From Salpingoeca rosetta (Eukaryota > Protista > Choanoflagellata): DNA of 64,000 nucleotides. The notes under the pieces were generated by a model. The model saw only the letters and a program-made list of their open reading frames with translations, had not been told where the DNA came from and did not search any database. Below are positions 47,059 through 55,891 of this stretch, in pieces; position 1 is the first letter of the stretch; each line of letters starts with the position of its first letter. The stretch is taken from positions 163,049 through 227,048 of the forward strand of contig JAWQFM010000030.1 in assembly GCA_033442325.1 (NCBI GenBank). Direction: 5' to 3'. Both the position numbers and the translations under genes were made by a program.

Positions 47059-50000
47059 TCACCCCTCCGCCACGCTGCGGCTGCCGTGTGCCAGCATCTG
47101 GAACAGCTCCCCGTTGGCAACAGACCTGCGGTTGCGTTGTCGTGTTTGCTGGCTGTGCTTCGGTGACACATGTTCGCTGCGCACGTTCCTCGGCCTTCTG
47201 GTCAACGCCACGTCAGCAGCAGTCAGCGAATGGCGGCTCTGCTCACTGCTTCTGTCATGTACACTGGCATATCCGTCGCCACTGTCAAAAGCATCGTCAT
47301 CATCAGCATCATCGTCATTGATGCTCAAAGCGCGCACAGCCGAGTGTAACGCTGCGTGCTCAACACCAACTGGGCTTGTCTCAGCAGCACGAGGACAATC
47401 AGCCTCGTCCCTTTCCATACCCACGCTAGTGCTTGCAAGCAACCGTGCTGGCGCTTGCCTGCGTGTGGTTGCCAAGGCCGTCTTGGGGCGACGCGTGTGT
47501 TGCACAGCAGGCACCTCCACCCGCACACGTGCTGCTGTACCCAGTGCAGCCGTTGTCTGTCCATCCTGTGCAACCGCCTCCACCACCTGCACCGCGCTCC
47601 TGTCAGCAGAGCTTGCTTGCTCTCCGTGCATTACTGTTGTCGCCGTTGCTGATGGCATGTAGGTATGCTGGTATCTGCGCTCATACAAGCGGTCATCCAG
47701 TGACCTGTGCTTCTTCACTCCTCGCCCAACAGTTGCGCCCAGACTGGCGCTCACAGTACAGCGACCACCACCGCCACCACCACTATCACTGCCGTGCACC
47801 GTTCGCTCCTTGTCAGTGCTGTGAGCGCTGTTGCTATCGTCGACACCAGCACCCACCGCTGCTGTCGACCGTGCTGCCCACGGTGCTGTGGTTGTCGTTG
47901 GAGAGGTGGCTGTGGTTGCGGGTGTGGCAAAAGTGTGGTGGGTGACTGTACGAGGTGATGTCGTGCTGTATTGTGCTGGTGATGCGTGGCGGGACAGAGA
48001 GGACGTTGGGGTGTAGGGCGACAACGAACAACGTCGTCGCGGTGTTGCGTGTCGGCCACTGCGATCACCACCATGGTAGCCACCGCAGTAGTCGTCACTG
48101 CAATGATCAACAGCAGCATCACAAAGGCCGCCACTGCCGCTGCCGCTGCCGCTGCCACCATCAAGGCTGGTCATGTGCATGCTGCTTATGTTGGCAGAAG
48201 CACTTTTGCCATTCCCATTGCTCGTCACATGTGCGCTCACGTGGTCGTGGTCGTCGCGGCTCGGGTGGCGATGTGTTGCGCTGTGTGGGCTGGCGTTACG
48301 CTGCTGCCCCGGTGCTGGTGGCAGCAGACGTGGTGACAGCGCTGGTGTGCGTGCGCGCCGAGTGGTGGCTGGGGATGGCGATAGGGACGGCGATGTTGCG
48401 AGAGACTTGGACTTGACGCGTGGGTTGGATGTGCTGCGAACGTTGCGCGGCGTTGTGGCGCTTGCAGCTACGGTGGCAAAAGCGCGATGTGCGGGCGAGG
48501 TGGAGCGGAGGGATTGCCGCAGCACGCTGCGCTGGTGGGCATTCAACACGTGCGCCACATGTCCACTGATGAGGTGGAGAATGGTGGACGGAATGCTATT
48601 GAGAAAGGACTGGCACGACACGCCGCCGCGCTGGTAGGAGAGGCTTGTCTGCACACAGCGCTCAAACCGCTTGGTGCGAGCGAGGTGCTCAAACACAAGC
48701 AAGGACAGATGACACGCTGGGGTGTCAATGCTCAACCACCGGTCAATGGCACGTGGACCACCGCCACCGCCTCCGCCAGCACCAACGCTGCTGCTGTCGC
48801 TGCCCCGACCAAGGCGGTTGCTGCGGGCACCGTAACCCCGGACACCACCAATACCGCTGCTGTTGCTTTCGGAACTCAGAATCACTTCATCTTCGTCGTC
48901 GCACCCAAAGCCACACTCAAGCAGCCGCGCGGTGTACGTGTCCGTGGCAACACTTCCGTTCTCAAAGTCAAACTCAGACGGGCTATTATTGTTGTTGTTG
49001 TTGTTGTTGTTGTTGTTGTTGTCGCCGCCGTTGATATTGTTCGTCGTGGTGATGGTGGTGGGGGCATTGTTGATGGTGTTGTCGGTGCTGGTGTAGCCAT
49101 CGTCGTTGTCGCTTTGCTGACGTCCGCTGTGCTCGCCCTGAACGTCCACAACGTGTGTGTTCGCCAGGTCAACAGTCGACGCAGCGACATCATCACCATC
49201 ATCATCACCATCATCATCACCATCATCATCATCATCATCGTCACCATTGACTGCATCGTCATCTTCGTCGATGCTTTCGTCACCATCATCATTATCGGGG
49301 ATGCCAATGGGAAATACACCTCCCTGTTGCAGCAGCTGCTGGCACAGGCGTGCGTACTCCTGCTGCTTCTGGCAGGCAGTGCACATCCTATCACCGTCAT
49401 CTCCACCATCATTGCCGCGTCCGGCACAGCCACCTGTCCCAACACCACGACAGTCGCCCGTGCAAGCGCTCACATCTTCACATTCAAACGTGCGCGAAAA
49501 CGCAGACACACGTGCACCCTTCTTCTCATTGCCTCCGTGCCACATGCGGAACTGCTGACGACGGCTGCTGCTGTTGCCGCTACCATTGTTGGCGCTACCA
49601 ACACCTCTACCACCACCAACACCCATCCCAACACCCATCCCAACACCAGATGGATCAGCGCCGTGGATCTCATCAGTGATCGTCGTGCTCCACCGGGGGT
49701 GGGACAGTGCTCGCCTCCGCATGCGGTATCGTCGCTCAATCGGCTTTTTGTTCGTGGCCGTCGTCGCGTTGGCGATGTCGGTGGTGGTGGTGGTGGTGGT
49801 GGTGGTGGTGGTGGTGGTGGTGGTGTCGGTGGTGGTGTGATGATGATGCTGACCAATGCCACCATCACCAGCACCGGTATCAACACCACCCACGGTACCG
49901 TTTGCACCACCAATGATGCTGTCAGCAATGGCACGACTGCCGCCGCCGTGTCGGTCAGTTGTGATGCCAGAAGCGTGAAGCAGTTTGGGGACGTGTGCAT

Positions 50001-53000: not shown

Positions 53001-55891
53001 TGTTGTTGTTGTTGTTGCACGTCACCACTGCCACCACTGCCACCACTGCCACCATTACCACCGGTCTTGCTGCTGCTGGTTGAAGGTGTTATTGTTGACG
53101 AGCCTTGCACGTAGTGGGTGGGTGCCGCAGGTGCACTCCGCGTAACGTGTTGATCGTGATGGCCATCATCTTCAACAGTTGCGCGCGCACCCATCATGCC
53201 CGCGCGCTCCATCATGGCGACAGTTTCCTGATTGGGAAGGAAAGATTCATCCCGGTGCCCAACAACGCCCACGGTGTGTCCGCGCCGGCGCGCAAACCGC
53301 TGGCGCCGCTGCTGCTGTTGTTGTTGCTGTTGCTGGTGTTGATGATGTTGGTGGTCTTCTTCTTGTTGATGGTGGTGGGCTTGGTGGTGGGCTTGGTGGT
53401 GTGGCTCTGGGCTGAGGGGCGGCGTTGCTGCAGACTCCTGAACTCCTTCTGGAATTGACATCGCCGTTATCCTTGCCGCCGCTGTTGACATCGTCGGTGC
53501 TGTCGTCACGGCCCCTGGTGCCAGCAGTGCCAGCGGTGCCAGTGGGGTTGTTGTTGTTGCTGCTGCTGCCACGCCCACCGCCATCGCACCAGGTGCTGCT
53601 GCGTGGGGCGAGGCTGGCATGTCCATCGACGACGATGATGACGACGAGGACTGACCCTTGATGGCGTAGTAGTGCTGCTGCCGCTGCTCGCGCGTCAGCG
53701 TGGACGACTGACGACGGAGGGCTGGCCCGCGCCGCCGCGATGGTGGTGGTGGTGGTGTTGCCAGTGGTGGTGGTGTTGCCAGTGGTGGTGGTGTTGCCAG
53801 TGGTGCTGGTGCAGGTGTTGTCGATGGTAGCGATGATGGCTGAGAAGGCGACGACGATGATGATGATGATGATGATGATGATGCGGCATCAGAACACGAG
53901 TGTGCATCCTGCTGCTGCTGCTGCTGCTGCTGCTGCTGCTGCTGTTGCTGTTGCTGCTGCTGCTGCTGAAACAGAGAGTCGGAGATGCCGTCATGCATGG
54001 CCACGCCAGCAGTTGCGGTGGGATGCTGGCTCTGATCAACACCATCCGTTTTGTCCTGCTGCTGCTGCTGCTGTTGAAGCTTGCGACGACGCTGAGGAAA
54101 GGGGCGAAGTGCCTCTGGAACGCCACTTGTGCTGCTGTCACTGATGCTGTTGGTACTGACGTTGATGTTGTCGCCACCAACGTTCGCGCCAGAGTGGTTG
54201 GCTTCGGTAATCACATCAACCGTGTAAGCGCTCTCGCCATCGGCGCGACCATCACTGGCGCATCTAGCAGCACCTTCGCTGTTTCCGCCTGCATCATCAA
54301 CATCACCACAGCCCATGATGGTGTGGATGGAGGTGGCGGTGGAAGGGCGGCTGCCGCACGCCCCACGCAGCGTGCTTGGCGTGGTGACAGACGAGCACGA
54401 ACGCGACTCACAGCTGAACGTGTCACTGCGGGCGGTGGCCGTCGTGTTGGTGCTGGTGTTGTTGCTGGTGCTGGTGCTGGTGGTGCTGGTGAAGCTTGCT
54501 GTGGAAGTGTCGCTGGAACTGTCGCACTTGTTGCAGGGTGAGCCGTCGGCGGTGTCGACAGCAGCAGTGCCACGGCCACTTCTGCCGCCATGCAATTGCG
54601 GCTTGCTGGCCCATGTGGGTGATGCTGCCACCACAGGGGCCGACGATGTAACCGAGGGAGGTGCATGCGTGCCCTTGTGCAGTGCAAACGCATCACCCTG
54701 CACAGACGGCGTGCAAGATGTCGGTGACATTGTGTCGGCACCACACAACTCGTCCGTTTCCACCTCCACTCTTGCCTGCCGCGCAAGCCCACGCCGTCCA
54801 CGCGTGTGGTTGTGGTTCCTGTTGTTGTAACTGTTGCTGGTGATTTTGGTGGTCGTCGTCGTCGCTGCGGCTGTGGTTGTGGTTGCGGTTGTGGCGCTCA
54901 TGTCGCGTGCTGGCGTCGAGTCGCTTCGCTCCAAAGAGGAGGACGCACTGCTGCTCTGAGAGTCTTGCTTGCGGTGACCATCGTTCCCAGTTCTGTCGTG
55001 ACTGCCGCCGTTGTGATTGGCGTTGTGATGGTCATCATCAAGGTGATGGTGGTGGTGGTGGTGGTGGTGGTGGTGGTGGTGGTGGTGATTGTGGTGGCCG
55101 CCACCATTGCTTGTGTCACTGCCACCAACAGCAGCACCGTCGCCGTGCTGGGCAGTCATCATGCTAGCCCGCCGCTGCAGCACGCGGTGAATGCGGTCGT
55201 GCGCATCCGCAACCAGCCGGTCAAACATGTCCTTCTTCGGCACGAGAAACAGGCGCGCGCGCTGGAGTATGGGCAGGAAGTACGGGGCAATACCACCGTC
55301 CACCTGCAGGTAGATGATGTCGTGGAACATAGCGGCAAGAAAGGCCAGCGGGTCGTCGGCCGGGTTTGGCGGTGCAACATCAAACACGTGCTTCGTGGCG
55401 TGGTACATGCGGTGCGGCGCGCTCATGCTCAACACGACAAGTTCTGCCATCTTCACCACCTCCGACAGCGGGATGGCGATGCCGAGGGCAGCAAAGGCCT
55501 TGGTGAACCCTGCCGTGATGCGCTTCATGTCCCTGTCGCTGTGCCCGCTCACGGAGACTGCCCGCATCGTGTCGTTGATGAGCGTGCGTATGTCGCTCTC
55601 GTGCTTTAACCCATATGTGCTCAGAGCCGGGTCGTCATCCCACGCCCAGGGGTCAGCAGCGGCAGCAAACGCAGCAAACTTGTCTGGCTGCGCGCGACAC
55701 GAGCACGCGGACGCATTTGTGACGACAGACGAAAACGATGCCCGGGACACCCCCGCAGCCGTTTCCGTGGAGAGGAGACTCAGAACAGTGCACGCCGTGG
55801 CGGTCGTGTCGCTGCGGCCTCGCATTTTCCTCGTCCTGGCCGGCTGGCTATTGCCGTTGCTGTTGCTGTTGCTGTTGCTGTTGCTTGCCAT
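47059..55891 (-). CDS. Giant intronless HD-superfamily metal-dependent phosphohydrolase-like protein with massive low-complexity insertions (one apparent frameshift near 52423)
   Basis: ORFs 52421-55891 and 47059-52581 join if one T is removed from GGTGATTGATGGT. Conserved blocks: MSAPHRMYHATKHVFDV...LAAMFHDIIYLQVDGG; VFG...GLNECLSCVVAMDLL...CACIEMTIPFR; AARDVGNFA...FLLNTWKLLPELNANL; and a C-terminal helical block at ~48520-48750. The ORF spans a 100-N gap. Confidence 0.75.
52087..52186. other. Assembly gap (100 N) inside a (GAT)n poly-Asp tract
   Basis: Run of n flanked by (CAT)n on the + strand. Confidence 1.
52876..53017 (-). repeat. Pure (CAA)n tract encoding a long polyQ in the HD-domain protein
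   Basis: ~140 bp of (TTG)n on the + strand. A second polyQ, encoded by (CAGCAA)n, lies at ~50893-51007. Confidence 0.95.

Follow-up and report, generated by a model that had tools for sequence, protein, structure and literature searches.

A probable giant choanoflagellate member of a mostly bacterial protein family with a predicted class I phosphodiesterase-like HD fold

In class I 3',5'-cyclic-nucleotide phosphodiesterases (PDEs), as exemplified by PDE4, Zn/Mg is bound by a His, a His-Asp doublet, and an Asp, with the first His serving as the general acid. The signature that follows the doublet in this class is HD-x2-H-x-G...N. Generic HD phosphohydrolases, such as 2pq7, YpgQ (5dqv), YedJ (3gw7), PhnZ (4n71), and the C-terminal part of PPX/GppA, have H...HD...D residues on a helical core. 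Here we describe a gene at 47059–55891 of a 64,000-nt stretch of Salpingoeca rosetta DNA (the window), which is predicted to be related in fold to these enzymes. All coordinates are those of the window, and the gene lies on the minus strand throughout. The gene probably represents the choanoflagellate branch of a mostly bacterial family of ~450 amino acids that is not covered by Pfam. Judging from structure models of compact relatives, this family belongs to the HD superfamily and is class I PDE-like in shape, although it falls outside Pfam PDEase_I.

Three related proteins of S. rosetta have been recorded before. The supplement to Matriano et al. (2021; PMC7971027) classes PTSG_01953, PTSG_01879, and PTSG_12934 as 'FOREIGN', i.e., as candidates for horizontal transfer, with best hits to a Phaeodactylum protein and to Leptolyngbya and an acquisition dated to the 'Urchoanoflagellate'. 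No fold or function was given for them. According to the same source, the median S. rosetta gene has five introns and intronless genes make up only 8.79% (PMC7971027), so that a family of 13 members with single open reading frames (ORFs), as described below, is unusual for this organism.

The gene is present in the assembly as two ORFs. ORF1 (52421–55891; 1,156 codons plus stop) contains block 1 of four conserved blocks and the first ~940 codons of the insert that follows it. ORF2 (47059–52581; 1,840 codons plus stop) contains blocks 2–4 and is genuinely coding from around residue 54 (52420), its first ~53 codons being the tail of ORF1 read out of frame. A family profile built from 124 mostly compact members matched all four blocks in order, as a colinear whole-profile match. 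Block 1 (55256–55540; ORF1 residues 118–212) aligned to profile positions 7–98 (E 7e-30). It carries R-x-Y-H-x3-H, with RMYH starting at 55411 and the His codons at 55402–55400 and 55390–55388, and then FHD, with the HD codons at 55324–55319, followed by the Tyr and Asp of 'YLQVDGG'. Block 2 (51067–51309; ORF2 residues 425–505; profile positions 118–200, E 5.6e-23) contains the motif 'FG...GLNE.LS...CIE.TIPFR' with invariant Glu residues, GLNECLS starting at 51237. Block 3 (50494–50889; ORF2 residues ~565–696; profile positions ~203–332, E 1.6e-39) contains 'ARDVGNF...FLLNTWKLLPE...NLERGRAY' with a conserved Asp in 'RDV', ARDVGNF starting at 50835. Block 4 (48508–48732; ORF2 residues 1284–1358; profile positions 383–456, E 8.5e-6) is the core of a C-terminal helical domain; it was matched by a profile of the S. 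rosetta paralogs at E 8.8e-20 and is 51% identical to the ortholog of Barroeca. A preliminary description of the window had located the same blocks and motifs (RMYH, HD at 55319–55324, GLNECLS, ARDVGNF, and block 4), and translation confirmed them. It had also considered that the blocks might belong to unrelated families; all four matched one family in order.

The family is widespread. An exhaustive HMMER search with the paralog profile recovered 786 cluster representatives (E<=1e-3), of which 398 also passed E<=1e-30; most were ~450 aa long. When a single genome of each bacterial species was scanned for the motif, at least 587 carriers were detected, the best 80 of which were mainly from Anaerolineae, Spirochaetota, Microscillaceae, and WOR-3. 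Clusters of the same predicted shape in the ESM-Atlas (TM 0.93–0.94 against the model of the bacterial member P0016) comprised 'hypothetical proteins' of 441–461 aa, were commonest in Cyanobacteriota and Myxococcota, and had no Pfam family in common. Further, one family member was encoded on a 62-kb contig with plainly bacterial neighbours. The compact proteins of 441–461 aa from bacteria, cyanobacteria, and diatoms, among them the metagenomic P0016, share with the window copy all four blocks, their order, and the near-invariant residues. The window copy differs from them in being ~6.5 times longer through low-complexity sequence at three loop or linker sites and in a tail. The colinear compact family of cyanobacteria and algae that the preliminary description had named was thus found, as attested by profile matches, ESM-Atlas clusters, and the published best hits.

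No match was obtained in Pfam or NCBIfam for the whole ORFs, for the four blocks (Pfam E<=10), or for eight compact homologues (Pfam E<=1), and sequence searches of the PDB with block 1 and two family profiles revealed no HD or PDE match. The family possibly corresponds to 'Npun_R2479-like' (PF28239) of Pfam 38.1, the sole link being an embedding look-alike score of 0.89 for block 1. Bacterial gene neighbourhoods offered no functional clue: conserved neighbours, including those encoding an epimerase, an HNH nuclease, and TyrRS, among others, were found only in closely related Anaerolineae. For the C-terminal helical domain (profile 334–431; block 4, 48904–48972), a non-significant similarity to centrin EF-hands was observed (E 0.035–0.09); from this sequence likeness, the domain could be a degenerate EF-hand-like module.

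The fold was examined in models of compact relatives. The AlphaFold2 model of the bacterial member P0016 had a predicted local distance difference test score (pLDDT) of 96.7 and a predicted template modelling score (pTM) of 0.93; the model of an S. rosetta paralog on contig 5 had a pLDDT of 84.7, with values <50 in its own low-complexity insert. In an exhaustive VIA search with P0016, the top 16 rows were all class I PDEs (Z 11.6–13.6, 223–256 residues aligned), the alignments spanning model residues 1 to ~310. These matches included PDE1, 2, 3, 4, 5, 7, 8, and 9, PDEs of Leishmania and T. cruzi, and RhoPDE of S. rosetta, and were followed by yeast PDE2 (Z 8.8) and then by generic HD hydrolases (Z 5–7.5). 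The paralog model repeated this ranking across its insert: its top 16 rows were again class I PDEs. For both models together, class I PDEs scored Z 10.9–13.6 and generic HD proteins Z 5–8. Of the first 35 rows for the bacterial model, 34 were entries of the HD superfamily; for the paralog model, such entries occupied the top 19 rows, below which generic HD hydrolases recurred among unrelated helical proteins. Foldseek with P0016 also ranked class I PDE catalytic domains first, albeit weakly (E ~0.02, probability ~1). The first ~320 residues of the family are accordingly predicted by the models to form an all-helical HD-superfamily domain whose closest shape is the ~16-helix class I PDE catalytic domain, and the last ~100 residues would form a small helical domain.

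The family has Y-H-x3-H, H-D, and a later acidic residue in common with the class I PDEs (PF00233; PDE4, PDE5, PDE7, PDE9, and RhoPDE, PDB 5vyd). It differs from them in having 'HDxxY.QVDGG' rather than 'HDxxHxG..N', in the spacing of its motifs, and in the additional C-terminal helical domain. The window copy reads FHDIIYLQVDGG at this point, against a family consensus of FHDxVYxQVDxG, with Tyr in place of the third His. Generic HD phosphohydrolases likewise have H...HD...D and the helical core in common with the family, but they are much smaller (~180–220 aa) and score below the PDEs, and the Pfam HD-clan models (PF01966 and relatives) miss the family. The assignment to the HD superfamily made in the preliminary description agrees with the modelled fold of the relatives and with the retention of the H, HD, and D residues.

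Among the 124 members, positions conserved at >=90% (P0016 numbering) included H48, H52, H71-D72, Y75, D79, N136, E165, R171, and D218, and E137, E240, and N298 were invariant. The window copy retains R45, Y47, H48, H52, H71, D72, Y75, D79, N136, E137, E165, R171, D218, E240, and N298, and has the usual residue of the family at 24 of 25 checked sites. The exception is N216, which is replaced by Ala, as in all of its closest choanoflagellate relatives. By contrast with this conservation, a subclade of six S. rosetta paralogs on contigs C25, C28, C24, C32, and C17 (two copies), i.e., loci L007, L012, L008, L011, L009, and L010, has lost H71 or D72 in five of six members, E165 in all six, and D218 in five. 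The HD doublet now reads FQD, FHA, or FRE in this subclade, and the frames are open over 803–1,029 aa. From their sequences, these six are likely pseudo-enzymes, and the joint loss of the HD doublet, E165, and D218 is the strongest internal argument that these residues act together as one functional site.

The window copy keeps its complete set of putative active-site residues (Y-H-x3-H, H-D, a pair of Glu, and the 'RDV' Asp). Its structural blocks are kept as well; low-complexity sequence has expanded three surface loop or linker positions and the C-terminal end. By analogy with HD and PDE enzymes, the His, Asp, and Glu residues may hold one or two divalent metal ions, which would activate a water molecule for cleavage of a phosphoester. 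A cyclic or other nucleotide would be the leading guess for the substrate.

Blocks 1 and 2–4 lie in different frames of the assembly, and we consider it likely that 47059–55891 is nevertheless one intronless gene of ~2,942 codons, of an S. rosetta-type choanoflagellate. In the window's own genome (55.4 Mb), 12 further paralogs were found, each a single open frame of 551–1,075 aa. The profile of these 12 paralogs was colinear across the break, ORF1 corresponding to its positions 7–115 and 128–189 and ORF2 to 208–639 and 606–739. The ortholog of Barroeca monosierra (P0007, 1,299 aa) aligned to ORF1 residues 102–220 and to ORF2 residues 429–510, 574–750, and 1283–1355. Since the paralogs and the Barroeca ortholog span the break colinearly in single frames, the two ORFs are best read as one gene. 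In addition, no stop codon occurred in the coding frame over 1,156 + 131 + 1,675 codons, in comparison with 19–132 in the other two minus-strand frames; within the ORF1 stretch alone, the figures were zero versus 19 and 35.

The published S. rosetta proteins match the window's genome at 94–97% identity, and two of them, PTSG_01953 (575 aa) and PTSG_12934 (621 aa), are compact proteins that hold all four blocks in order. PTSG_01953, PTSG_01879, and PTSG_12934 resemble the window copy in being encoded by single ORFs and in having low-complexity sequence at the same insertion sites, and their blocks are 55–60% identical to those of the window copy. They differ from it in belonging to a different subclade and in length (575–714 aa vs. 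~2,942 aa). Word searches among proteins of 204–649 aa and 1,012–3,220 aa found no annotated protein of the locus itself. Two pairs of near-identical paralogs were also observed, at 979402/1112032 on contig C17 (~130 kb apart) and at 1417704/1784690 on contig C5 (~367 kb apart); with end branches of 0.006–0.023 in the tree, they look like very recent duplications. The public model of another family member, P0003 (PTSG_13122, 1,258 aa), contains an enolase domain (PF00113) and bears the UniRef name 'phosphopyruvate hydratase'; the enolase part may stem from the merging of gene models and not from a true fusion.

The single continuous ORF implied in the preliminary description is absent from the assembly, which has both a frame break and a gap. 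The break lies at TT 52423–52424, in 'GGTGAT-T-GATGGT' of a Gly-Asp (GGT/GAT) repeat, where an extra T (52424/52423) gives rise to the stop codon of ORF1, TGA at 52423–52421; beyond it, Gly-Asp is again encoded, now in the +1 frame. The gap is a separate feature ~240 nt downstream of the break: a run of N (52087–52186) within a poly-Asp (GAT)n tract (52018–52312) with 42 and 22 GAT copies on its two sides. On each side, the sole stop-free frame reads poly-Asp and runs into the long ORF, which makes the collapse of a poly-Asp tract the simplest explanation of the gap. The nominal 100 N happens to keep the frame, and the real length of the gap may differ. The Gly-Asp coding repeat (52393–52467) recurs at no fewer than 80 other loci of the genome with 78–93% identity, which accounts for the breaking of contigs and read mapping there; a search of the own genome for a second copy of the junction returned only this repeat. 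An intron that would restore the frame was considered, and the sole GT...AG candidate in the repeat, of 30 nt, is a multiple of three and too short. Both the +1 break and the run of N most likely reflect misassembly of simple repeats, a problem that would split the gene in any annotation.

Low-complexity sequence makes up ~85% of the product, with homopolymer runs of His (15), Gln (20, 47, and 39), Asp (32 and 11, on either side of the gap), Thr (15), and Asn (12), and the inserts are rich in Ser, Ala, Gly, and Arg. Insert 1, between blocks 1 and 2, spans ~1,320 codons and takes the place of the hairpin and loop at ~93–113 of the P0016 model. Two choanoflagellate-specific mini-blocks lie within it. 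The first, 'RIEPWPQL...RPERLALMA' (52493–52684; paralog profile positions 128–189, E 7e-7), is the last conserved element before the frame break and is modelled at pLDDT 82–93 in the paralog; the second, 'VNEVLTWWSDE' (51595–51627), is the first such element downstream of both break and gap and forms a helix in the paralog model (pLDDT ~85). Insert 2 (50890–51066), between blocks 2 and 3 at the loop ~192–200 of P0016, is a His/Gln-rich stretch of 59 codons (78% Gln) that includes the run of 39 Gln. Insert 3 (48733–50493; 587 codons), between blocks 3 and 4, is rich in Gly, Asp, Thr, Arg, Ser, and Asn and contains a short conserved piece, 'FDFE...ARLLECGF', at 48904–48972; it occupies the linker ~327–378 of P0016 between the PDE-like and the C-terminal helical domains. 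The C-terminal tail (47062–48507; 482 codons) is of low complexity and rich in Ser, Ala, Arg, and Thr.

These insert sizes agree with the estimates of the preliminary description. The read-through gene is 2.3 times as long as the Barroeca ortholog and 6.5 times as long as the bacterial form. Smaller inserts occur at the same sites in all choanoflagellate copies, and the sites are all at the surface or in a linker, which fits a domain that still folds. Folding around the loops is seen in the model of the compact paralog, with its insert at pLDDT <50, and would be an extrapolation for the giant protein. No literature on low-complexity or poly-Gln expansion in S. rosetta was found.

Transcription was examined with two stranded RNA-seq runs (X20 and X21) over 52313–52874, with 52393–52467 masked as a repeat. 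Raw reads covered 52313–52392 and 52468–52874, i.e., insert sequence on both sides of the break, at depths of ~3–7 in one run and 20–118 in the other. All first mates mapped to the plus strand, which in most stranded libraries denotes minus-strand RNA. No splice joints were found in either interval, and the splicing out of inserts that the preliminary description had raised was thus not seen there. Logan contigs stopped inside the repeat 52393–52467. Contig sets of 6–9 Mb, probably transcriptomes (the run type was guessed), held 80–84% of the words sampled from the 9-kb stretch, which indicates that the inserts are not spliced out.

Several observations weigh against the interpretation of the locus as one gene for a PDE-like HD protein with a retained active site. 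The frame is broken as assembled, and the 75 nt masked in read mapping (52393–52467) are exactly those that hold the break. The fold of the giant protein is predicted from models of compact relatives. A Z of ~13 is within reach of helical models through the arrangement of their helices alone; what speaks against coincidence is the homogeneity of the list, the clear drop after the PDEs, the coverage of most of the PDE domain, and the register of the conserved motifs. No block and no compact member matched Pfam PDEase_I or HD, even at lax thresholds. AlphaFold and profile comparisons had been proposed in the preliminary description; as carried out on natural compact relatives, the models gave a PDE-like HD fold, whereas hhalign of the family against the PDEase_I exons of the same genome, while placing Y-H-x3-H...H-D in the PDE register, returned a probability of 3.9%. 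Furthermore, half of the paralogs have lost the motif, which suggests from sequence that the family may tolerate non-catalytic roles.

One alternative is that the frameshift is real, the locus being either a recently broken gene or a source of two polypeptides, one with block 1 plus insert and the other with blocks 2–4 from an internal Met, and no intact HD domain being made. The assembly does show the extra T and the TGA, ORF2 has an ATG at 52581, RNA coverage in run X21 was 3–4 times deeper over the ORF2 flank of the break than over the ORF1 flank, and no database protein of 1,012–3,220 aa from the locus was found. However, the frame stays open for 1,156 codons before the break and for ~1,790 codons after it, the break sits in an error-prone assembly context (a repeat present at >=80 other loci, ~240 nt from a gap), and no interruption occurs in the Barroeca ortholog or in any of the 12 paralogs. 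The step in depth is missing in run X20, and the high-depth bins of X21 adjoin the GAT repeat and may draw reads from other loci. A real frameshift is therefore unlikely in our view. It is less probable still that parts of the inserts are cryptic introns and that the mature protein is much smaller. This alternative takes its appeal from the intron density of the genome, with its median of five introns and 8.79% of intronless genes, and from PTSG_01953, which is listed with apparently one intron (PMC7971027) and whose published model is without a 17-residue Thr-rich stretch encoded by the open frame of its locus. It is at odds with the absence of in-frame stops across 8.8 kb, with the lack of RNA-seq joints over 52313–52392 and 52468–52874, both of which are insert, and with the small, probably RNA-derived contig sets that hold 80–91% of the words of a stretch of which ~85% is insert.

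The gene might also be intact and its domain not a hydrolase, acting instead as a nucleotide- or metal-binding or structural module in a large disordered scaffold. The loss of the HD doublet, E165, and (in five) D218 from 6 of the 13 paralogs with long open frames implies that the family has non-catalytic uses, and the low-complexity content of the protein (~85%) and the failure to match both the PDE signature and Pfam PDEase_I point the same way. On the other hand, none of the near-invariant polar residues has been lost from the window copy, from its ortholog in Barroeca, or from the bacterial members, as expected under catalytic selection, and we regard a non-hydrolase role for this copy as improbable. 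A single gene encoding a PDE-like HD domain with its putative active site retained accordingly remains the reading that we favour.

The origin of the family in choanoflagellates was explored with a quick, unrooted tree, in which the window copy was represented by the contiguous stretch of ORF2 residues 400–770. It grouped with Barroeca P0007 and the metagenomic sequence P0009 (Shimodaira–Hasegawa-like approximate likelihood ratio test, SH-aLRT, 88 and 92), and this group lay within a choanoflagellate clade whose support was 100. Eighteen of the 19 choanoflagellate rows fell on one side of a branch with support 95 and formed two subfamilies, both including Barroeca and one also including Hartaetosiga. 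A diatom-like eukaryotic group was placed elsewhere, among metagenomic sequences. P0014, an insert-free protein of 459 aa from the Salpingoeca macrocollata transcriptome, fell outside the choanoflagellate clade, beside a metagenomic sequence; this placement would be explained equally by a separate acquisition and by bacterial sequences contaminating the transcriptome. A foreign, probably bacterial origin of the family is plausible. The preliminary description had proposed a transferred enzyme: the transfer is plausible here and has been published for three paralogs, whereas the enzymatic part is a prediction.

These results provide a fold and a testable hypothesis of a PDE-like HD metal site for a widespread uncharacterised family, present in at least 587 genomes of bacterial species, in choanoflagellates, and in a diatom-like group. 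The published 'uncharacterised candidate HGTs' (horizontal gene transfers) of S. rosetta turn out to be part of a 13-member single-ORF family, one clade of which is without the active-site residues. The window copy would be an extreme case of a globular enzyme domain tolerating disordered inserts of ~1,300, ~60, and ~590 residues, useful for the study of low-complexity expansion in loops. In S. rosetta itself, it is a further candidate component of signalling by cyclic or other nucleotides. A more far-reaching scenario, to which we give little credence at present, is that the ~450-aa family is an unrecognised bacterial sister of the eukaryotic class I PDEs, which was acquired and expanded to 13 intronless copies in S. 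rosetta, six of them pseudo-enzymes, and that the giant copy is an active nucleotide phosphodiesterase whose ~2,500 disordered residues serve to localise it or to raise its local concentration, for example within a condensate. Condensate formation, which the preliminary description had also suggested, is pure speculation. If the scenario were true, it would add a new layer of cyclic-nucleotide signalling in the closest relatives of animals.

Other features in and around the gene were also recorded. ORFs on the plus strand over the gene (e.g., 48487–50280, 597 aa) resemble mirror ORFs of repeats rather than genes. Just downstream of the gene stop, a (GT)n microsatellite of ~360 nt (46070–46430) and an (AC)n-rich tract of ~400 nt (46600–47000) were found. 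The two tracts are reverse complements of each other and form a long imperfect inverted pair, and they account for the extreme GC and AT skews observed there.

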